64,000 nt of DNA from Hypanus sabinus. Lineage: Eukaryota. A program made the translations under genes and the position numbers. The notes below the pieces were generated by a model that saw only the letters and a list, made by a program, of their open reading frames with translations, was not told the DNA's origin and did not search any database. Positions 24,801-47,234 of this stretch are shown one piece after another. The number at the start of each line of letters is the position of its first letter. Position 1 is the first letter of the stretch. The stretch covers positions 19,096,001-19,160,000 of the forward strand of contig NC_082722.1 in assembly GCF_030144855.1 (NCBI RefSeq), written 5' to 3'.

Positions 24801-25611
24801 TGGGAGATCGAGTCCAAAGTAAAAGAAGCCTAACAGGATGACCCCGAACTTAGCAATGGACCCGGCGATGGCCTGTATGTGCCTGTTTCCGTCTGGTCTC
24901 AAGTTCTCCAATGGGAGCACAGGTCTCGGTTTACATGCTACCCCGGGAGTGATCGGACCCTAGCGCTCCTGAAAAAGCATTTTTGATGACCGTCCATGGA
25001 GGCGAATACCCCTTCCTATGCCTCGGCATGTTCCATCTGCGCCCGGGGGAAAGCCTCTCATCGGCTGCATGCGGGTTTACTTCGCACTCTACCTGTCCCT
25101 TATCTTCCCTGGTCGCACATCGCCCTGGACTTCGTCACTGGTCTACCTCCTTCACAGGGTAACACCACCGTACTCACCGTGGTAGACCGGTTCTCCAAGG
25201 CGGTGCACTTCGTAGCCCTCCCTAAACTCCCTTCCTCTCAAGAAACCGCAAATCTCCTCGTCCACCACGTCTTCCGCCTCGATGTAATCTCAACAGACAT
25301 AGTCTCCAATCGCGGTCCCCAGTTTATCTCACAGGTATGGAAAGCCTTCAGGCAAGCCGTAGGTGCATCGGTCAGCCTGTCATCCGCCTTCCACCCCCAG
25401 ACGAATTGGCTGACGGAACGAGTCAACCTGCGTTGCATAACGGCAAACAACCCGACTACCTGGAGCGTCCACCTCCCGTGGGTTGAATACACCCTCAACT
25501 CTCTGGTGAGCTCTGCCATTGGAAGTTCTCTATTCGAGTGTTCCCTAGGGTATCAACCCCCCTCTGTTCCCCGTGCAAAAGGAGGAGATTGCAGTACTGT
25601 CGGTCCAAGAC

Positions 25612-28600
25612 GTGGAAAGTGGCCAGTGAGTGAGTGAGCCAGTGAAGGAGTGGAGATTTGAGGCTTTGACTCGAGAGATTCTGGCAGTTTTGGCAGTTGG
25701 ATTGTGCAATCAAGTCATTCAAGATCGGAATAGCTCAGCAGAAAGATGTTGGTTAGGCAATCAAGATTTGAATAGCTCTCACTCAGCAAAAAAGCAGCTG
25801 ATTGGGCAATCGAGGTCAGGTGACCAAGCAGTTTGAACAGCTCAAACACATAAATAGAGGGGTACCTCAAGCGGAGCCACCTGCGGAGAGCGACCAGTGA
25901 TTGAATGGGCCAGTGAAGGAGTGGAGATTTGAAGCTTGGACTTGAGAGGCTTCGACGAGAAGAGGCGGAGGACGAGTTTGTTCCCAGTTAGTCTTTACAA
26001 TGCCCCCTGAGACGGTGATCTGCCTCTCCTGTGAGATATGGCAGTCTTGGGTGAACTCCCCTCTTCCACAGTGTCGCATCTGTCAGAAGTGCATGCGGCT
26101 CCAGATCTGCAAGACCATGTGAGGAAGCTGGAGCAGCAGCTGGATGACCTTCGACTCATAAGGGAAAATGAGACAGACATAGATGAGAGCTACAGGGAGG
26201 TAGTCACACCTATGCTGCCGGAAGCAGGTCGTTGGGTGACAGTCAGAGGGGGAAAGCGAAGGTGAGTAGACAGGTCGTGCAGAGCATCAGAGGAGCCATT
26301 CCCCTGAATGATAAGTATACCGTCCTGGATACTGTTAGTGTGGACGACCGACCAGGTATGAGCCACAGTGGCAGGGCCTCTGGCACTGAGTCTGACCCTG
26401 TGGTAAAGAAGGATGGGACGGAGAAGAGGAGGACTGTCGTCATTGGAGACCCAATATTCAGGGGAGCAGACAGGAGATTATATGGACGTGAGAAGGACAC
26501 CCGCATGGTTTGCTGCCTCCCGAGTGCCAGGGTCCGGGATGTCTCTGACCGGCTGCATTACATCCTGTTACGAGAGGAAAAGCATCCAGAAGTCGTGAAA
26601 CATGTTGGTACAAACGACATAGGCAGGAAGAGGGATGTGGTCCTGATGTGCGAGTTTCGGGAACTAGGCAGAAGGCTGAAGAACAGGATCTCAAGGGAGG
26701 CGTTCTCAGGTTTGCTGCCAGTGCTACGTAATAGTGATGGTAAGAATTGGAGGAGATGGCAGTTGAATGCGTGGCTGAGGAGTTGGTGCATGTGGCAGGC
26801 ATTTAGATTTTTGGATCACTGGGATCTCTTCTGGGGAAGGTGGGACCTGGATAGATTGGATGGGTTGCACTTGAACACGGGGGTAAGCAATATCCTTGCT
26901 GGTAAGTTTGCTAGCATGGCTCAGGAGGGTTTGGACCTGGAGCAATAGAGCAGTGAAAGAAATGCATTGAGTAAATCCAGATCTAACCTATAGAGAGGCT
27001 TTCGGGAAAGAGAAGCAGAATTAAGGGTTTAAAGGTAGTAAGGTAGAAGGGCTAAAGTGTGTGTACTTCAATGCAAGAAGCATCAGGAACAAAGGTGAGG
27101 AACTGAGAGCTTGGATACATACATGGAATTATGATGTAGTGGCCATTACGGAGAGTTGGCTGGCACCAAGGCAGGAATGGATTCTCAATATTCCTGGAAT
27201 TCAGTGCTTTAAAAGGGATAGAGAGGGGGAAGGGGAGGAGGGTTGGCATTACTGGTCAGGGATACTATTACAGCTACAGAATGGGCGGGTAACGTAGCAG
27301 GATTTTCTTTTGAGTCAGTATGGGTGGGAGTCAGGAACAGGAAGGGAGCAGTTACTCTATTGGGAGTATTCTATAGGCCCCCACGTAGCAGCAGAGATAC
27401 TGAGGAGCAGATTTGGAGGCAGATTTTGCAAAGGTGCAAAAATAACATGGCTGTTATCATGGGTGATTTTAACTTCCCTAATATTGATTGGCACTGGATT
27501 AGTTCCAAGGGTTTAGATGGGGCAGGGTTTGTTAAGTGTGTCCAGGATGGATTCCTGTCACAGTTTGTTGACAGACCGACTAAGGGAAATGCCATACTAG
27601 ATCTAGTATTACACAACGAACCGGGTCAATTCACAGATCTGTCAGTGGTTGAGCATCTGGGAGACAGTGATCACATCTCCCTGGCTTTTAGCATTACCAT
27701 GGAAAAGGATAGAATCAGAACGGACAGGAAGATTTTTAACTGGGGAAGGGCAAATTATGATGCTATAAGGCTAGAACTTGCGGGTGTTAATTGGGATGAT
27801 GTTTTTGCAGGGAAATGTACTATGGACGGATGGTTGATGTTTAAGGATCTCTTGCAGGATGTTAGGGATAAATTTGTGCGGTGAGGAAGATAATGAATGG
27901 TAGGGTCAAGAAACCATGGGTGAAAAGTGAGGTGGAAAATCTAGTGAAGTGGAAGAAGTCAGCATACATGAGGTTTGGGATGAAAGGTCTATTGAGGAAT
28001 ATATGGTAGCAAGAAAAGGAGCTTAAGAAGAGGCTGAGAAGAGCAAGAAGGGGTCATGAGAAGGCTTTTGAGAGTATAGTAAAGAAAACCCCCAGGCATT
28101 CTTTAATTATGTGAAGAACAAAAGGATGGCAGGAGTGAACGCAGGACAGATTAGAGATAAAAGTGGGAAGATTTGCCTGGAGGCTGTGGAAGAGAGCGAG
28201 GTCCTCAATGAATACTTCTTTTCGGTATTCACCACTGAGAGGGAACTTGATGACGGAGAGGACAAAATGAGTGAGGTTGATGTTCTGGAGCATGTTGATA
28301 TTAAGGGAGAGGAGGTGTTGGAGTTGTTAAAATACATTAAGACAGCTAAGTCCCCGGGGCCTCATGGAATATTCCCCAGGCTGCTCCACAAGGAGAGGGA
28401 AGAGATTGCTGAGCCTCTGGATAGGATCTTTATGTCCTCGTTGATCACCGGAATGGTAGGAACCGGAGGATTGGAAGGAGGCGAATGTTGTCTCCTTGTT
28501 CAAAAAAGGTAGTAGGGATAGTCCGAGTAATTATAGACCAGTGGGGCTTACGTCTGAGGTGGGAAAGCTTTTGGAAAAGATTCTTAGAGATAGGATCTGT

Positions 28601-31336
28601 GGGCATTTAGAAAACCATGGTCTGATCAGGGACTGTCAGCATGGCTTTGTGAAGGGCTGATCGTGTCTAACAAGCCTGATAGAGTTCTTTGAGGAGGTGA
28701 CCAGGCATATAGATGAGGACAGTGCAGTGGATGTGATCTACATGGATTTTAGTAAGGCATTGGACAAGGTTCCACACGGTAGGCTTATTCAGAAAGGCAG
28801 AAGGCATGGGATCCAGGGGGATTTGGCCAGGTGGATTCAGAATTGGCTTGCCTGCGGAAGGCAGAGGGTTGTGGTGGAGGGATTACATTCAGATTGGAGG
28901 GTTGTGGCTTGTGGTGTCCCACAAGGATCTGTTCTGGGACCTCTACTTTTCGTGATGTTTATTAACGACCTGGATGTGGGGGGTCGAAGGGTGGTTTGGC
29001 AAGTTTGCAGAGGACACAAAGGTTGGTGGTGTTGTAGATAGTGTAGAGGATTGTGGAAAATTGCAGAGAGACATTGATAGGATGCAGAATTGGGCTGAGA
29101 AGTGGCAGATGGAGTTCAACCCGGAGAAGTGTGAGGTGGTACACTTTGGAAGGACAAACTCCAAGGCACAGTACAAAGAAAGTGGCAGGGTACTTGGTAG
29201 TGTGGAGGAGTAGAGGGATCTGGGGTACATGTCCGCAGATCCCTGAAAGTTGCCTCACAGGTAGATAGGGTATTTAAGAAAATTTATGGGGTGTTAGCTT
29301 TCATAAGTCGAAGGATAGAGCTTAAGAGACGCGATGCAATGATGTAGCTCTATAAAAATTTAGTTCGGCCACACTTGGAGTACTCTGTACAGTTCTGGTC
29401 GCATCACTATAGGAAGGATGTGGAAGTATTGGAAGTGGTACAGAGGTGATTTACCAGGATGCTGCCTGATTTAGAGAATATGGATTATGATCAGAGATTA
29501 AGGGAGCTTGGGCTTTACCCTTTGGAGAGAAGGAGGATGAGAGGAGACATGATAGAGGTGTACAAGATATTAAGAAGAATAGACAGAGTGGACAGTTAGC
29601 GCCTCTTCCCCAGGGTACCACTGCTCAGTACAAGGGGACATGGCTTTACGGTAAGGGGAGGTAAGTTCAAGGGGGATAGTAAAGCAAGGTTTTTCACTCA
29701 GAGCTTGGTTGGTACGTGGAATGCACTGCCTGAGTCGGTGGTGGAGGCAGATGCACTAGTGAAGTTTAAGAGACTACTAGACAGGTATATGTGGTAATTT
29801 AAGGTGGGGGGCTATATGGGAGGCAGGGTTTGAGGGTCCGCACAAAATTGTGGGCCAATGGGCGTGAAATGTGATGTGCTATTCTTTTTTTATTTCTCAC
29901 TATTTATTCTACATGCTCACAAAACAGGAGTAGCTCAAAAAGAATAACAAGTCCAATAATCAACACAATTAGTAGAACAGCATGAAAAAAAGCATTGTTC
30001 CTCAAACGTAGAAACCTCCGAGTCTGGATTATTTCTTCAAAGGCAAAATGAAACTGATGGAAAATGAAAGGTAAGGTTACAATCATCTCAAGCTGAACAG
30101 AAGTCAGGACTTAGTAGTGGTGTTTCTCTTTCTTCAGGAACACCTCTTTTTTGTGTATTTGAAGACAACCGTCGTTTTAAGATAGCAGATGCCAATTCGA
30201 CAATTGTGGTTAGAGCCAAGCCACTCAGAATACATTTGTTATTTGCCTTTAATTCTTTTAATGCTTCAATGATATCATTCCTGTTTGCTTCAGGGTGCGA
30301 TTCCAAGAGAATCTTCATTAGTTTGTTGAAACTACTCAAATTAGCAGAATTTGAGGGAATGAATGTTCCTATTGTTGTAGGGGTGTCTTGTAGACACCGC
30401 ATCTGTTTATACGTCCGTCTGCTCATCTTATGTGAAGCTGCATAATGAATCTTTATTAATTCAGAATAACAGTCCCATTGACTGTCTGCTTTGAATTTAT
30501 TATTCCTTGTAGCATGGTCAAGCATCAGGTGGTGTTCCTTCAGTAGGGGCTGTGTGTGATTTTTAAGTACAGATAACATGTGGTTTCCTGAGATTTTTAC
30601 CATATGGACTTTAATGTGCACTCTATGATATTCCCTTCCTTTCATTTCATCCACTGCTAACTTGGCAAATTCTGGAGAGTCAATTTTCAGAACTGCACAC
30701 CTGTAATTATTGCTGGAGAATTCACAATGTGGATATTGAACAGAGCATTTTTGGAGATTTGGGTTTCCCAGAATTTGAGGTAGACACTGGCAATGCAACT
30801 GCGTGATCCTCTGCTTTAGAAGAGCTTAAAGATAACTATGAGAGCATAAGGAAGAAAGTGCTAGAAGGCAAATCTTTGGACAGTCTCTCTTTGCTATCTG
30901 TTGAGTTAAGGAGTCTTCCATATGCTACATTTGTTCCGGCAATGTTGGGAGAGAAATCATCCTCTTCTCAGGATCAAAGCTGTTTGAATTATAGAAATGA
31001 AGTGGCTTTGTCTGAAGAACTACCTTGTGAAGACCTAACTAGAAAAAATTGTGGAGATGATAAAAAGCCTGGAGAGCAACCCGACGAACTACGTTGTGAT
31101 CGTAATCAACATAAGTCAGATAAAGCCGACAGTGTTTGTGAAGAGACAGTAAATCAAGCCAAGGACCTTGAAGTAATTAGTGACTGGTTTTATGCAGAAG
31201 AGAATTTTGTTTCCCCTGGTGACTCTGAACCAACAGACGGGAAGGTGAATGATCAAGGTGGAGCTGTAGCATCAATGGGTGAACCAAGAAGCAATGAATG
31301 TGTTGAAGTGCTGTACTATTCTATGTGTACTATTCT
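25612..31336 (+). mobile_element. Full-length CR1 LINE (5' UTR, ORF1 with Cys motif and SGNH esterase, ORF2 APE and RT), decayed; its tail is interrupted by the RBM44 retrocopy
   Basis: ORF1 CLSC..CQKC, VVIGD, HVGTNDIG, DGLHLN; ORF2 [51 protein letters not shown]. The sequence aagac is present at both junctions (25607-25611 and 31337-31341). Confidence 0.93.
29886..31307 (-). pseudogene. RBM44: RBM44-like processed pseudogene with 5' inversion
   Basis: Minus segment 29886-30800 encodes an RRM half (NYRCAVL..AKLAVDEMKG..IKVHMVK) and the C-terminal helical region (TFIPSN..SFNKLMKILLESHPEANRNDIIEALKEL..LSGLALTTIVELASAIL), then stop 30088, AATAAA (29908-29903) and an A7 tail. Plus segment 30801-31307 encodes the upstream region (ALEELKDNYESIRKKVLEGKSL..LSVE..DWFYAEE). 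Flanked by a 15-bp TSD with 13/15 identity. Identity rests on recalled similarity to vertebrate RBM44. Confidence 0.85.
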
Positions 31337-31993
31337 AAGACCATATCGATCGGTGCCTTATGGTTTGGGAGGAGACATGCACGGCACTACTCAGATCAAC
31401 AAAACTCTATAAGAACGCGGCTGACCGACACCGGACTCCAGTACCTGAGTTCCAACCAGGGCAGATAGTGTGGCTTGCATCCAATGACATCCCGCTCAAG
31501 AGCGATTATAGGAAACTCGCCTCTCGGTTCCTGGGACCATTCAAGGTCGAAAGTGTTATCAATCCTGACTGATTCAGGCGGTGCGCCTGAAGCTGCCAAC
31601 ATCAATACGCATCCACCCGACTTTTCAATTTTCCCAGTAAAAGCCAGTTTCCGTCAGCCTCTTGTGCCTCCCGGTTGAGACTCCCCACCTGAGCGTATCA
31701 TCGACAACCATCTGGCATGCACCGTTCGAAGACTACTCGATGTGCGCAGTAGGGGCAGGGCTTTCCATTTCCTGGTAGTTTAGGAAGAGTGTGGTCCAGA
31801 AGAGAGTTCCTGGGCCGCCGGTCCTTCATCCCAGACCCTTCCCTCATCCAGGATTTTTATCCAGTCCATCTAACCAGGCCTGGAGGATCGCCGGGAGGCG
31901 CCCGTTGAGGAGGGCTACTGTCATGGTCCCCTCCGGCTATTTACCTCAGGAATTGGGCCTCAGTCCCCACGTTTAGTTACCAATTATTCCCGG

Positions 31994-34199: not shown

Positions 34200-35150
34200 C
34201 GGCGACTCCATTATTTGCACCTTCGGAAGCAGCGCTGTTTCTATCCTTTTTACCCTTTATCAGGGGACACTGACCTGGAGTTACACGTGGACTTCGGTTT
34301 TCTGCGGAAATGGGACTCGCTCTCAGGGCCTCACAAGCGGCCGCTTTTAGATATGCCAAGGACGCGGTCCGGAAGAGTAGCATGCCGTCAAGGTACCGGA
34401 TTTTCGTGGATTTGGAGACGAGCTAATGCAAAGCCGGGCCGCTGCCTGAAGGGGATACAAGGAAGATTGAAAGCAGCGAGCAGGCTGCTGGCTGTGTGCC
34501 CAGAGATCCGTGTTCTTTGGGCAGAGAGCTGGGAAAAAGTAAGGCAACAGACTTTGAAAACAAAGAATCAGCAAATTGTCTTGTTATGTCTCCCCTTTCG
34601 CTGCGAAACGTGGACATCAATNNNNNNNNNNNNNNNNNNNNNNNNNNNNNNNNNNNNNNNNNNNNNNNNNNNNNNNNNNNNNNNNNNNNNNNNNNNNNNN
34701 NNNNNNNNNNNNNNNNNNNNNNNNNNNNNNNNNNNNNNNNNNNNNNNNNNNNNNNNNNNNNNNNNNNNNNNNNNNNNNNNNNNNNNNNNNNNNNNNNNNN
34801 NNNNNNNNNNNNNNNNNNNNNNNNNNNNNNNNNNNAAAACCGGCCGAACGAGTGGTCTTTGGGAAACTACACGTCTGTCTTTATTGATGCTTTGCTGCAC
34901 GCTTGCATGTTCGACTGGGGATGCAGATGATTCTTTTTTGCTGTTGTGTGGAGGGTGGTCGTTCCTTTTCTACTGCTATGCGTGGGAGGGGTAAGCTGGG
35001 CGAGGGGGGCGGTTTGGGTTTCTAACTTTTAACTGTCATTCATTCTTTGGGGCACTGCACTGTATTCGTGAATATTTGTGTAGGAAAAGAATTTCAAGAT
35101 GTATATTGCATATATTTCCCTGATCTTAAATATCAACTTAAAACCTATTG
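34200..35150 (+). mobile_element. Probable non-autonomous retroelement spanning the gap
   Basis: GC-rich head and an L2/Rex-type 3' tail (aagaatttcaagatgtatattgcatatatttccctgatcttaaa). Confidence 0.35.
34622..34836. other. Assembly gap (215 N)
   Basis: Run of n characters. Confidence 1.
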
Positions 35151-41793: not shown

Positions 41794-42518
41794 TGTTATG
41801 GTTCAATCTGGAGCACGCAATCCTGGTCTTGATCCGGTCCGCGGAGTCTGGACTCCGGGTCTCGTAGCCGTTCTCCTTTCACCATTAAGCCAAAATGGGA
41901 TCATCTTGGCTTAAGGAGGCGCACCTGATGCCTATCAGCTGGCAGGTGTACATAAGGGGCTCTGCCAGTGAGTCGAGTTGGGCGTCGTTCTGTTTTGTTT
42001 TGTTTGTCTTGTACTCGCTGGTCCCTCTGTTCGGTCTGGTTCGCCTTGTTCGCGCTGTTCGCCTGTCTATCAGGTTTAGACCAGGTGGTCCTGTTTGCGC
42101 TGGTCGCCCGGTTTCATTCTGTTAGTCCTGTTCGCCCCGCCTTGGAGTACCCACCGTTAATCATCTAGTTCTGTGAGTCAGTCTCAGAGTCACCCAGGAT
42201 CGAGCTCCCTTCCTATCCCTTGCCTCCGTCGGGTAAACCCGGCCGGACTGCCGTTGCCCGGCGGGGAACTCCGCTCTTTCCTACCCCTCGCATCCGACGG
42301 GTTGTGCCCTGCAATCTGCCCAGGCCCTTCTGTTCCTGCCTGGGAGGCCGGACGCTGTCCAGGAGTTATACGGCCTGCCCAGGGGGCTATCCTCCCAGAA
42401 TTCCTTGTCCCACAGACCCATCCTTTAGCCTAGTCAAGATCCGGCCTTGCCAGGAACTCCAAGATCACCATGAACGTCACGTCCCTCACGCGCACCACGG
42501 TCTAACCATCTTAAAACA
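41794..42518 (+). mobile_element. Probable solo Gypsy LTR
   Basis: Starts tgttatgg, has gcgcacctg and a TATA-like cataa, a pyrimidine-rich body, and ends ..aaca. No TSD could be confirmed. Confidence 0.6.
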
Positions 42519-45500
42519 TAGAACATAGAATAGTATAGCACATTACGGGCCCTTCGGTCCACAATGTTGTGCCGACCCTCAAACCCTGCCTCCCATATAA
42601 CCCCCCACCTTAAATTCCTCCATATATCTGTCTACTAGTCTCTTAAACTTCACTAGTGTATTTGCCTCCACCACTGACTCAGGCAGTGCATTCCACGCAA
42701 CAACCACTTTCTGAGTGCAAAACCTTCCTCTAATATCCCCCTCGAACTTCTCTCCCCTTACCTTAAAGCCATGTCCTCTTGTACTGAGCAGTGTTGTTCT
42801 GGGGAAGAGACGCTGGCTGTCCATTCTGTCTATACCTCTTAATATCGTGTACATCTCTATCCTCTCATTCTCCTTATCTCCAAAGTGTAAAGCCCTAGCT
42901 CCCTTCATCTCTGATCATAATCCATACTCTCTAAACCAAGCAGCATCCTGGTAAATCTTCTCTGTACCCTTTCCAATGTTTCCACATCCTTCCTATAATG
43001 AAGCGACCAGAACTGGACACAGTACTCCAAGTGTGACGTAACTAGAGTTTTATAGAGCAGCGTCATTACACCGCGTCTCTTAAGCTCTATCCCTTGTCTT
43101 ATGAAAGCTAACACCCCATCAGCTTTCTTAACTACCCTATCAACCTGTGAGGCAACTTTCAGGGATCTATGGACATGTGCCCCCGGATCCTTCTGCTCCT
43201 CCACACTACCAAGTATCCCGCCATTTACTCTGTCCTGTGCCTTGGAGATTGTCTTTCCAAAGTGTGTCACATCACACTTATCCGGGTTGAACTCCATCTG
43301 CCACTTCTCAGCCCACTTCTGCATCCTATCAATGTCTCTTTGTGTCGTCTGCAAAATTGTCAACCCTTCTAGCGCCACATCCAGGTCGTTAATAAAAATT
43401 ACGAAAAGTAGAGGTCCCAGAACAGATCCTTGTGGGACACCACTAGTCACAGCCTCCAAATCTGAATGTACTCCTTCCACCATTACCCTCTTACTTCTGC
43501 AGGCAAGCCAATTCTCAAGTGGCCAAACTTCCATGGATCCCATGCCTTATGACTTTCTGAATAAGCCTACCGTGTGGAATCTTGTCAAATCCCTCACTAA
43601 AATCCATGCAGATCACATCCACTGCACTACCCTCATCTATATGCCTGGTCACCTTCTCAAATAACTCTATCAGGCTTGTTACGCACGAACATGCCATGTT
43701 CACAGAGCCATGCTGACTGTCCCTGATCAGACCACGATTCTCTGAATGCCCATAGATCCTATCTCTAAGAATTTTTTCCAACAGCTTTCCCACCACAGAC
43801 GTAAGGCTCACTGGTCTATAATTACCTGGACTATCCCTACTACCTCTTCTGAACAAGGGGACAACATTTGCCACTCTCCAATGCTCCGGTACCATTCCCG
43901 TGGCAACGAGGACATAAAGATTCTAGCCAGAGGTTCAGCAATCTCTTCCCTTTACTCATGGAGCAGCCTGGAGAATATTCTGTCAAGCCCTGTGGACTTA
44001 TCCGTCCTAATGAATTTTAACAACACCGACACCTCCTCTCCCTTAATATCAACATGCTCCAGAACATCAACCTCACTCATATTTTCCTCACCGTCATCAA
44101 GTTCCCTTTGAATGGTGAATATCGAAGAGAAGTATTCATTGAGGACCTCGCTCACTTCCATAGCCTCCAGGCACATCTTCCCACTTTTATCTCTAATCGG
44201 TCCTACCTTCATTCCTGTCATCCTTTTATTCTTCACATAATTGAAGAATGCCTTGGGGATTTCTTATACACGACTCGCCAAGGCCTTCTCATGACCCCTA
44301 CTCGCTTTTCTCAGCACATTCGTAAGCTCCTTTCTTGCTACCCAATATTCCTGAATAGGCCCATCTGATCCTTGCTTCCTAAACCTCATGTATGCTGCCT
44401 TCTTCCACCTAACTAGATTTTTCTCTTCACTTGCCACCCATGGATCCTTCACCCTATCGTTTTTTTATCTTCCTCACCGGAATAAATTTATCCCTAACAT
44501 CCTCTAAGAGATCCTTAAACATAGACCACATGTTCACAGTACATTTCCCTGCAAAAACAACATCCCATTTCACACCCGCAAGTTCCAGCCTTATAGCCTC
44601 ATAATTTGCCCTTCCCCAATTAGAAAATGTCCTGTCTTCTCTCATTCTATTCCTTTCTATAGTAATGCTAAAGTCCAAGGAGCGGTGATCACTGTCCCCC
44701 AGATGCTCAGCCACTGACAGATTAGTGACATGACCCGGTTCGTTGCCTAAAACTAGATGTAGTATGGCATTCCCCTTAGTCGGCCTCTCAACATACTGTG
44801 ACAGGAATCCATGCTGGACACAGTTAAGAAACTCTGCCCCATCTAAACCCTTGGAACTAATCAAGTGCCAATCAATATTAGGGAAGTTAAAGTCACCCAC
44901 GATAAGAACCCTGTTATATTTGCACCTTTCCAAAATCTGCCTCCCAATCTGCTCTTCTGTATCTCTGCTGCTACCTGGGAGCCTATAGAATACCCCAAGT
45001 TGAGTATTTGTTCCCTTCCTGTTCCTGACTTCCACCCATACTGACCCAAAAGAGTATCCTGCTACGTTACACACCCTTTCTGCAGCTGTAATAGTATCCC
45101 TGACCAGTAATGCCACCCCTACTCCCCTTTCCGCCTTTCTCTATCCCTTTTAATGCACTGAAATCCAGGAATATTGAGAATCCATTCCTGTCCTGGTGTC
45201 AGGCAAGTCTCCGTAATGGCCACTGCATCATAATTCCATGTATGTATCCAAGCTCTCAGTTCCTCACCTTTGTTCCTGATTCTTCTTGCATTGAAGTACA
45301 CACACTTTAGCCCTTCTACCTTTCTACCTTTACACCCTTTATTCTGCTGTTCTTTCCTCAAAGTCTCTCTATATGTTAGATCTGGCTTTACTCCATGCAC
45401 TTCTTTCACTGCTCTATCGCTCTGGGTCCCATTCCCCTTGCAAATTAGTTTAAACCCTCCCGAACCATTCTAGCAAATCTACCAGCAAGGATATTGCTGC

Positions 45501-45640
45501 CCCTCGAGTTCAGGTGCAACCCATCCAAACTGTACATGTCCTACCTTGTCCAGAAGAGATCCCAATAGTCCAAAAATCTAAAACCCTGCCCCGTGCACCA
45601 ACTCCTCAGCCACGCATCTTGTTCTATCCCTTAGTTGTTG
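42515..45640 (-). mobile_element. Near-full-length CR1 LINE (end of ORF1, APE, RT, tail), decayed
   Basis: Minus ORFs with [33 protein letters not shown] and KWQMEFNPDKC, and a (ctatgtt) tail at about 42520. Confidence 0.93.
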
Positions 45641-47234
45641 ATGTCCTGTCCCTAGTACTTCAGTGGCTGCGTCCTGAATTTGAGACCAGTCTCATGTCCC
45701 CTGGTGACAGCCGGAATGAAGCACTTTGTTTTGAGAGTCTCCAACTCTGAGCCAGGCATTCGAAGCTTTAATCTGTTCAGACACTGGGGATGTCTTCCAA
45801 AGACGGTCATATTCTTCCATTGGTTAAGTTGTTTCTTCCAGAGTGATAATTTCTTCATTTATCTGTTTTGTGCTTTAATTTCATTTTAGTGGTAGGTCCT
45901 TCTTATCAGAATTGCATGTGCTCACCTGGAGTGTTGAATCCTGTTTCAATAGATGAAAAAATATCCTTAGAATTTTTTCTGAATGTTGTACAAAGTTTAG
46001 TTATATATGTTATTCCTCTTCCCCCTTCTCTCCTAAGTAGCATTAATCTAAGCGTGTTCAAATGTACATTGTGTTTTCTAAAATTTATAATTTCAATTTT
46101 TACTTTTCTTTCTAAATTTTCCAGATGGGCTTCGATCCAAGATATTACGCCAGAAGAATACGTTAATGGGTATTATAATTACTATTATTCGTATTATATA
46201 ATTACCATAGGTGCCAACGCATGCGAGTAGCCAGATATCCTGCGCTGAGTGATCAGCGATTGTTCCTACGAACAATTCACGTTGCTATTGCAGTGCGACG
46301 CGGCTTTTCTACCGACTACTCAATTTTATTTCCCGTAAGCATCCGATCTTTATGGAACATTCATTGAAATCGTTGCTTGTACATCGCAGGGAAGCATGCA
46401 TGAGTTTACTGTTGCTGGTACTGCTTTTCAAACCTAGTATCAGTTCATTATGCACAGCTATCTTCCATAAGTTAAGTACTCTCTTTCAAGTAGCTCATTT
46501 GCACGAGGATAGCTTATCTGCATATTTTCACGTACTAGATGCGCCTTTTAAGCAAACTCCCACTTATCTGAGGAATAGCAATTTTGGTATCCGCTATATT
46601 AAGCTAAAATTCACAGCGGTAAGTATAGTACTCAAGAAAACGTAAACTAATAACTAACAAAAAATATTTAAAATTAAAGGTAACTGTCCAATACTTATTA
46701 ACATTGACGGGGTAGTCCACATTAACTTTGAACAGTATTTTTATATCAACAGATAGACAGATACGTAAATCATCTGAAGTTTAATTTAAGGGATATAATA
46801 CCGGAAATATATTTTCACACGAGAGTAACAGTTTATAGAAGACTCATCAAGTTAGATAATATGAAATCAAAAAACAAATGTGCCGTGGAATAGCATTGGA
46901 CTTTATTTCTGAGATTGGTAATTTTCCTGCTCATATTTTCCCTCGTATTGCTCGATAGGAAGTGTGGATTACACAGCTAATCTGTTTTCAAAGTTTTTTC
47001 TGTGCCCTCCCCCGCCCCCAGATATGTAGGAGTCATTTATAAATATTAGGCAATTCGTTGGCGTAAAGCATGTGACATCCTATTTTATCTTTTGCACCAT
47101 TTTAAAGGTAGAAGAAGGCTTTGCTGAGACAGGCAACATTGTTTAACTTTGTTCTCTATTTATTTTATTTGCTAGATGAGTCAGCATCGAAGAGACTCCA
47201 CCCGTCCAATGAGCAGCCGAGCCAGCAACCCACG

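Follow-up and report, generated by a model that had tools for sequence, protein, structure and literature searches.

A probable twin-primed retrocopy of RBM44 in the stingray Hypanus sabinus, with poly(A) at one end, an inverted 5' part and a flanking 15-bp target-site duplication

Inversion of the 5' part is found in 13% of human processed pseudogenes and in about 20% of L1 insertions (PMC12016303), and the twin-priming arrangement goes back to Ostertag and Kazazian 2001, as cited in the same article. The two cDNA ends lie no more than 20 bp apart in 46% of the human cases, and in the other 54% they are separated by a gap or overlap beyond 20 bp (PMC12016303). Microhomology at the junction has been reported for about 95% of 5'-inverted L1 copies (Kojima 2010, PMC2912911). 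Long interspersed nuclear elements (LINEs) differ in the RNA ends that they accept: L1 is “relaxed” in its use of poly(A), whereas CR1 and L2 require their own 3' ends (PMC3747384). Retrocopies are not confined to mammals, and 14,081 of them have been annotated for cartilaginous fishes in VGP genomes (bioRxiv 10.64898/2026.06.26.734816). A literature search on twin priming in fishes, sharks and reptiles returned no study of such inversions outside mammals among the papers it covered, which is no proof of their absence. Here we describe positions 29871-31322 of a 64,000-nt stretch of the Hypanus sabinus genome (contig NC_082722.1; the whole stretch is called the window below), where sequence derived from the gene RBM44 lies on both strands between the two copies of a direct repeat.

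The identity of the insert was established at the protein level. A library-wide protein search, with the minus-strand open reading frame (ORF) as the query, returned RBM44 C-termini, and the best matches came from rays; the closest protein was the RNA-binding protein 44-like of Hypanus sabinus itself (P0107), at 85 to 87% amino acid identity. When the whole window was searched with this protein by tblastn, amino acids 561 to 761 aligned with 30708-31310 on the plus strand (87% identity) and amino acids 808 to 995 aligned with 30711-30148 on the minus strand (85% identity); no further RBM44 piece was found in the 64 kb. An original prediction, made from the letters of the window, had recognized RBM44 on both strands and had read the interval as a twin-primed processed retrocopy. 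The tblastn result bears out the first of these claims, and the core of the second holds, with corrections to the position of the strand switch and to the fit of the breakpoints. The insert is a processed retrocopy of RBM44 that ends in poly(A) and is flanked by a 15-bp target-site duplication, and its 5' part is inverted in the geometry expected of twin priming.

The mRNA origin of the insert is evident from its lack of introns and from its 3' end. We mapped the exons of RBM44 in Callorhinchus (L001) and Pristis (L002), in which the intron positions were concordant, and projected them on the window. Nine exon joints fall inside the two uninterrupted segments. Those in the plus segment are 4/5 at 30764/5, 5/6 at 30944/5, 6/7 at ~30994, 7/8 at 31088/9, 8/9 at ~31157 and 9/10 at 31299/300, and those in the minus segment are 11/12 at ~30700/30701, 12/13 at 30426/30427 and 13/14 at ~30281. 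The Pristis introns at these nine joints measure 785 to 7593 nt, and the intron-bearing parent in Hypanus sabinus, an RBM44-like gene of 76 kb, lies elsewhere. Genomic contigs of a related ray (organism H) cover single exons only (30427-30703, 30765-30940, 31157-31301 and 29902-30143), unlike the RNA contigs, which are continuous across all of the exon joints. Because these genomic contigs break at the predicted exon ends, the parent gene has introns, and the intron loss supposed in the original prediction is demonstrated by the nine introns of Pristis and Callorhinchus together with the related-ray contigs. The 3' end of the insert is a normal mRNA end. As had been noted before, AATAAA (29908-29903 on the minus strand) is followed after 11 nt by a T run at 29885-29891, which is A6-7 on the minus strand, with six T's past the repeat or seven if the last T of the repeat is counted. 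Similarity to the parent genomic DNA (X15 rec13) extends no farther than 29902, that to the mRNA contig X19 rec21 no farther than 29915, and both of these positions correspond to the cleavage region.

Two RNA contigs, X19 rec21 and X25 rec28, from two related organisms, place the segments relative to one another. In X19 rec21 (1482 nt), bases 3 to 542 align with 30765-31304 on the plus strand and bases 686 to 1482 align with 30712 to 29915 on the minus strand, and the 143 nt between them are absent from the window. The same arrangement is seen in X25 rec28, with 148 nt missing, and both contigs give joints on opposite strands (30712/30707 to 31304). Since one RNA contig holds both segments plus 143 to 148 nt of additional sequence, the segments are neighbors in the mRNA that do not abut. 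The adjacency proposed in the original prediction thus stands insofar as a single RNA contig contains both parts in two organisms, but they are separated by ~143 nt, and the near-exact abutment of the breakpoints claimed there is false. The missing stretch of ~46 to 48 codons takes up the greater part of exons 10 and 11 and codes for the first half of the RNA recognition motif (RRM; RRM_1 at 775-841 of P0107). An exon-skipped isoform lacking exons 10 and 11 was also entertained as the template and was rejected, because each end keeps a part of these exons, 5 to 11 nt of exon 10 in the one case and 11 nt of exon 11 in the other: exon 9 ends at 31299 and is followed by GTGTT of exon 10, and AAT-(G>A)AT-TAC-AG of exon 11 is found ahead of exon 12, at 30711-30701.

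The strand switch itself had been put at 30800/30801, which is misplaced by ~90 nt. On the plus strand, 30708-30800 reads YCWRIHNVDIEQSIFGDLGFPEFEVDTGNATA, where Hypanus has HCWRIHNVDIEQSIFGDLGFPGFEVDTDNATA; given this match on the plus strand, the stretch is part of the plus segment and the junction lies at 30708-30711. The continuous reading ECVE-VALPVSTSN… that had been proposed across the earlier position is the plus segment read in antisense; it begins out of register by one base and runs into a stop after 25 codons.

A resident CR1-like LINE received the insert in its 3' tail. On either side of the insert is a copy of a direct repeat (29871-29885 and 31308-31322); the two copies agree at 13 of 15 positions, as originally described. 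No other pair is as good among the 62,044 15-mer pairs at equal spacing in the window. For an empty-site reference, we used a second copy of the host LINE family (42490-46000 on the minus strand, with reverse transcriptase at 42905-43543 and endonuclease at 44454-45116), the tail of which is identical over the 20-mer GGGAGGCAGGGTTTGAGGGT. This tail (42490-42640 on the minus strand) carries the 15-mer once, at 42527-42541 on the minus strand, and the host tail aligns to it free of gaps when the insert and one copy of the repeat are removed. The duplication and the host element count as demonstrated, as do the gap and the pieces' order and orientation. “Skip” joints leading from 29836-29863 to 31307-31309 were also evaluated as empty sites and were rejected; they are paralogous LINE tails, each with its own intervening letters.

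Read in the poly(A)-primed sense, the order of parts is duplication, inverted upstream piece, joint, downstream piece, A tail and duplication. The mRNA-3' end of the inverted piece, in exon 10, adjoins the duplication copy on the side away from the poly(A), and this is the geometry that twin priming requires. The outer joint is crossed by contig 6 of run X1 (organism A, 426 nt), which spans 30943-31368 without gaps, at 95.5% identity, and covers the inverted piece, the duplication, the LINE tail and the gypsy flank. At 31300-31310 this contig reads GTGTTCACGTG, where the RBM44 of Pristis has GTGTTCATGTG. Compared in this way, the mRNA-derived part appears to run into the GTG of the duplication, so that the GTG at 31308-31310 is common to the inverted cDNA and to the right copy. 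The resulting 3-nt microhomology would be compatible with a second strand that ended in …CAC and primed on GUG. The inner joint holds four bases, 30708-30711, that can be assigned equally well to either segment. The loose end of the RNA (X25, at 30709) reads …TGTCGACAGC and then ATTGCTGG, which would give CATT for the plus piece, and the parental residues N-D-Y-R give AATG on the other strand. Judged from these relatives' sequences, a single C-to-T change at 30708 would explain both an H-to-Y difference on the plus strand and a D-to-N difference on the minus strand. The coordinates of all parts are collected in Table 1.

Table 1. Parts of the RBM44 insert and of its host element, in window coordinates
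Feature	Positions	Strand	Remarks
Target-site duplication, left copy	29871..29885		gtgatgtgctattct; derived from the host LINE tail; its 3' end …TATTCT would be the first-strand primer end
Short poly(A) tail	29886..29891	-	A6; A7 counting the last T of the duplication
RBM44 3' untranslated region	29892..30147	-	AATAAA at 29908-29903
Non-inverted cDNA, putatively poly(A) primed	30148..30711	-	Last 11 nt of exon 11 plus exons 12-14; Hypanus aa 808-995
Inversion junction	30708..30711		tatt, original probably catt; readable as the end of either segment
Inverted cDNA, putatively internally primed	30708..31310	+	3' part of exon 4, exons 5-9, first 5-11 nt of exon 10; Hypanus aa 561-759/761
Target-site duplication, right copy	31308..31322		gtgctgtactattct
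Host CR1-like LINE body	25612..29870	+	Tail resumes at 31323-31336 past the insert

We consider it highly probable that these features arose through one process, L1-type retroposition in its twin-priming variant. The template would have been an RBM44 mRNA that had been spliced and polyadenylated. Its reverse transcription would have been target primed and would have taken place directly at a staggered break of the chromosome, within the 3' tail of the CR1-like LINE. The plus strand would have been nicked after …TATTCT (between 31322 and 31323, …TATTCT/ATGTG), and the T-rich end so produced would have primed on the poly(A) tail, from which the non-inverted cDNA, between 29892 and 30711, would have been made. 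The opposite strand would have been cut at a distance of 15 nt; its 3' end, …CAC, may have annealed to GUG in exon 10 of that mRNA and started another cDNA. Synthesis of this cDNA as far back as the middle of exon 4 would have given the inverted part, from 31310 to 30708. Both cDNAs would then have paired at their 3' ends over 4 nt (CATT/AATG) and been sealed, with loss of the ~143 nt of mRNA between the priming domains and with the 15-bp duplication left on both sides. For the parent mRNA, the scheme predicts GTGTTCATGTG at the duplication end, CAGCATTGC at the 5' end of the inverted piece and AATGATTACAGG at the 5' end of the non-inverted piece.

The host element bears on which enzyme was responsible. 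The CR1-like LINE (25612-31336) is nested in a Ty3/gypsy integrase gene. Tandem monomers of 271 nt make up its 5' end, its ORF1 contains an esterase-like domain, and it also encodes an AP endonuclease and a reverse transcriptase. It ends in a repeat that is not poly(A), and its own target-site duplication is the 5-bp AAGAC (25607-25611 and 31337-31341). When the LINE and one copy of AAGAC are removed, the integrase frame of the gypsy element closes perfectly (…VLSVQD-HIDRCLMVW…; VLSVQD/HIDRCLMVWEETCTALL), which places the insertions in the order gypsy element, LINE, RBM44 retrocopy. The T-rich primer at the putative first nick could pair with poly(A) and could not pair with the RNA of the sense-strand CR1 tail. 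We infer, as the original prediction did of L1-like machinery, that the enzyme was that of a poly(A)-using, L1-like LINE and not that of the CR1-like host. The host LINE is apparently full length. It begins with two of the 271-nt monomers in tandem (25614-25677 and 25885-25948, 86% identity), and its ORF1 (26232-26948) matches the GDSL-like lipase/esterase family PF13472 with an E value of 3.8e-07, just under the Pfam cut-off. Esterase-type ORF1 proteins are known from CR1/L2-like LINEs. Farther along the window there is a run of N at ~34700-34900, which is either an assembly gap or masked sequence.

Several observations weigh against this reconstruction of the retrocopy and of its priming. 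The poly(A) run is only 6 to 7 nt long, and the ~143-nt gap exceeds that of roughly half of the human cases. The 3-nt (GTG) and 4-nt (CATT) microhomologies rest on the Pristis exon, the organism A contig and the loose RNA end, and no independent read or contig crosses 30708-30711. As the original prediction had stated, the window contains no evident L1-clade element, all of its ORFs of at least 180 amino acids being CR1-like or gypsy. The putative nick, TATTCT/ATGTG, is T-rich, and its core TTCT/AT only approximates the L1 consensus TTTT/AA. Finally, the host LINE has a repetitive tail, in which a similar 14-mer forms a third unit at 31323-31336, and this slightly weakens the argument from the duplication. 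That same repetitiveness leaves some residual likelihood to a blunt insertion between two pre-existing units of the LINE tail, against which stands the match in length to the paralogous tail.

With the geometry of double priming at a staggered break unchanged, an enzyme from outside the L1 clade (CR1-like, of another LINE or of Penelope) could have acted in trans on the poly(A) mRNA. We regard this as unlikely. CR1-like LINEs dominate the window, in which no L1 was seen, the insertion site is an ATTCT/ATG boundary between units of a CR1 tail, and a preprint has CR1 or Tx1 sustaining retroduplication outside mammals, on the strength of correlation only (bioRxiv 10.64898/2026.06.26.734816). The strand putatively nicked here is, however, the sense strand of the CR1 tail, and its 3' end cannot pair with the tail of a CR1 RNA but can pair with poly(A). 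In addition, the CR1-like host produced a duplication of 5 bp, not 15 bp, and has an end that is a non-poly(A) repeat, and CR1 and L2 are “stringent” and need their own 3' end (PMC3747384), which the RBM44 mRNA does not have. The narrower proposal that the mobilizer was an abundant stringent LINE, such as the CR1-like family whose tail received the mRNA, and not an L1-clade element, is in our judgment a little less likely again. If it were true, such LINEs would occasionally use poly(A) mRNAs in trans and twin-prime, and they could account for the large number of retrocopies in cartilaginous fishes.

The inversion might instead have arisen after integration, if an un-inverted, 5'-truncated retrocopy was inserted first and its 5' 600 nt were later inverted at the DNA level with a deletion of ~143 nt. 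The end state would be formally identical, microhomologies of 3 to 4 nt are also compatible with end-joining repair, and the ~8% divergence of the copy from the mRNA of relatives would have allowed time enough for a rearrangement. Nevertheless, one breakpoint would have had to hit the boundary between insert and duplication (31307-31310) exactly and to leave the duplication intact, an outcome that twin priming gives without further assumption, and both breakpoints and the deletion would have had to stay within the 1.4-kb insert. We therefore think that a later inversion is quite improbable. A far smaller probability still attaches to an assembly artefact in which reads were misjoined to give the inversion. 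Misassembly is excluded at the right-hand junction, where the contig of organism A independently spans 30943-31368, and it could draw on the inner joint, across which no contig runs; yet a probable microhomology of 4 nt lies cleanly at that joint, the inverted piece adjoins the duplication exactly with its outer end, and a misjoin would not yield a matching pair of duplications around the whole. That two independent RBM44 retrocopies were inserted side by side in opposite orientations is next to impossible, in that nothing beyond the two orientations speaks for it, the plus-strand piece has neither a poly(A) nor a duplication of its own, and the pieces are consecutive parts of one mRNA flanked by a single pair of duplications.

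The product of the insertion is a dead pseudogene, which is 5' truncated and half inverted, lacks half of the RRM and contains an in-frame stop. This stop is a TGA at 30804-30806 in the plus segment, and the parental stop codon is gone from the minus segment. The 236-amino-acid ORF at 30798..30088 was considered as a retrogene and was rejected, since the plus segment, read in antisense, supplies the first 29 codons; only a TTC3_9th-like C-terminal helix within it scores in Pfam, and weakly. In the RNA runs, no contig showed the retrocopy's own arrangement. RBM44 is a protein of the intercellular bridges of male germ cells in the mouse (PMC3045441), and, by analogy, such a role for the ray gene would fit retrocopying in the germ line.

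The copy is old. Its divergence amounts to ~8% relative to organisms H and I (RNA contigs) and to 4.5% relative to the contig of organism A, which shares the insertion. Because the organism A contig has the same junction of retrocopy, duplication and flank, the insertion would predate either a species split or a segmental duplication; on the sequence comparison, it is probably shared by related species or else present as a diverged duplicate.

On its own, this locus changes little: retrocopies of cartilaginous fishes have been cataloged by the thousands, and twin priming is textbook knowledge. Its main use is as a data point on which LINE makes retrocopies in rays. As a base-resolved, nonmammalian case in which a cellular mRNA probably carries the full L1-type signature (poly(A), a 15-bp duplication, a 5' inversion and microhomologies), it adds to the evidence for poly(A)-using LINE machinery with mammalian-like integration mechanics at work in the ray germ line, and it offers an internal contrast within the same 6 kb, where the CR1-like host left only a 5-bp duplication. 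Compared with the 5'-inverted pseudogenes and L1 copies of mammals, it shares the single pair of ~15-bp duplications, the poly(A) at one end and the inverted upstream part at the other, along with probable microhomology at the 5' and inversion joints and the loss of RNA between the two cDNA domains. It differs from them in its stingray host, in an A tail of 6 to 7 nt against human medians of 27 to 39, in a largish gap of ~143 nt, in a putative nick at TTCT/AT in place of TTTT/AA and in that the responsible LINE is here only inferred. With the ordinary retrocopies of cartilaginous fishes it has in common that it is an intronless, promoterless and decayed copy of a germ line-expressed gene, and what sets it apart from them is a 5' inversion, base resolved at both of its joints.

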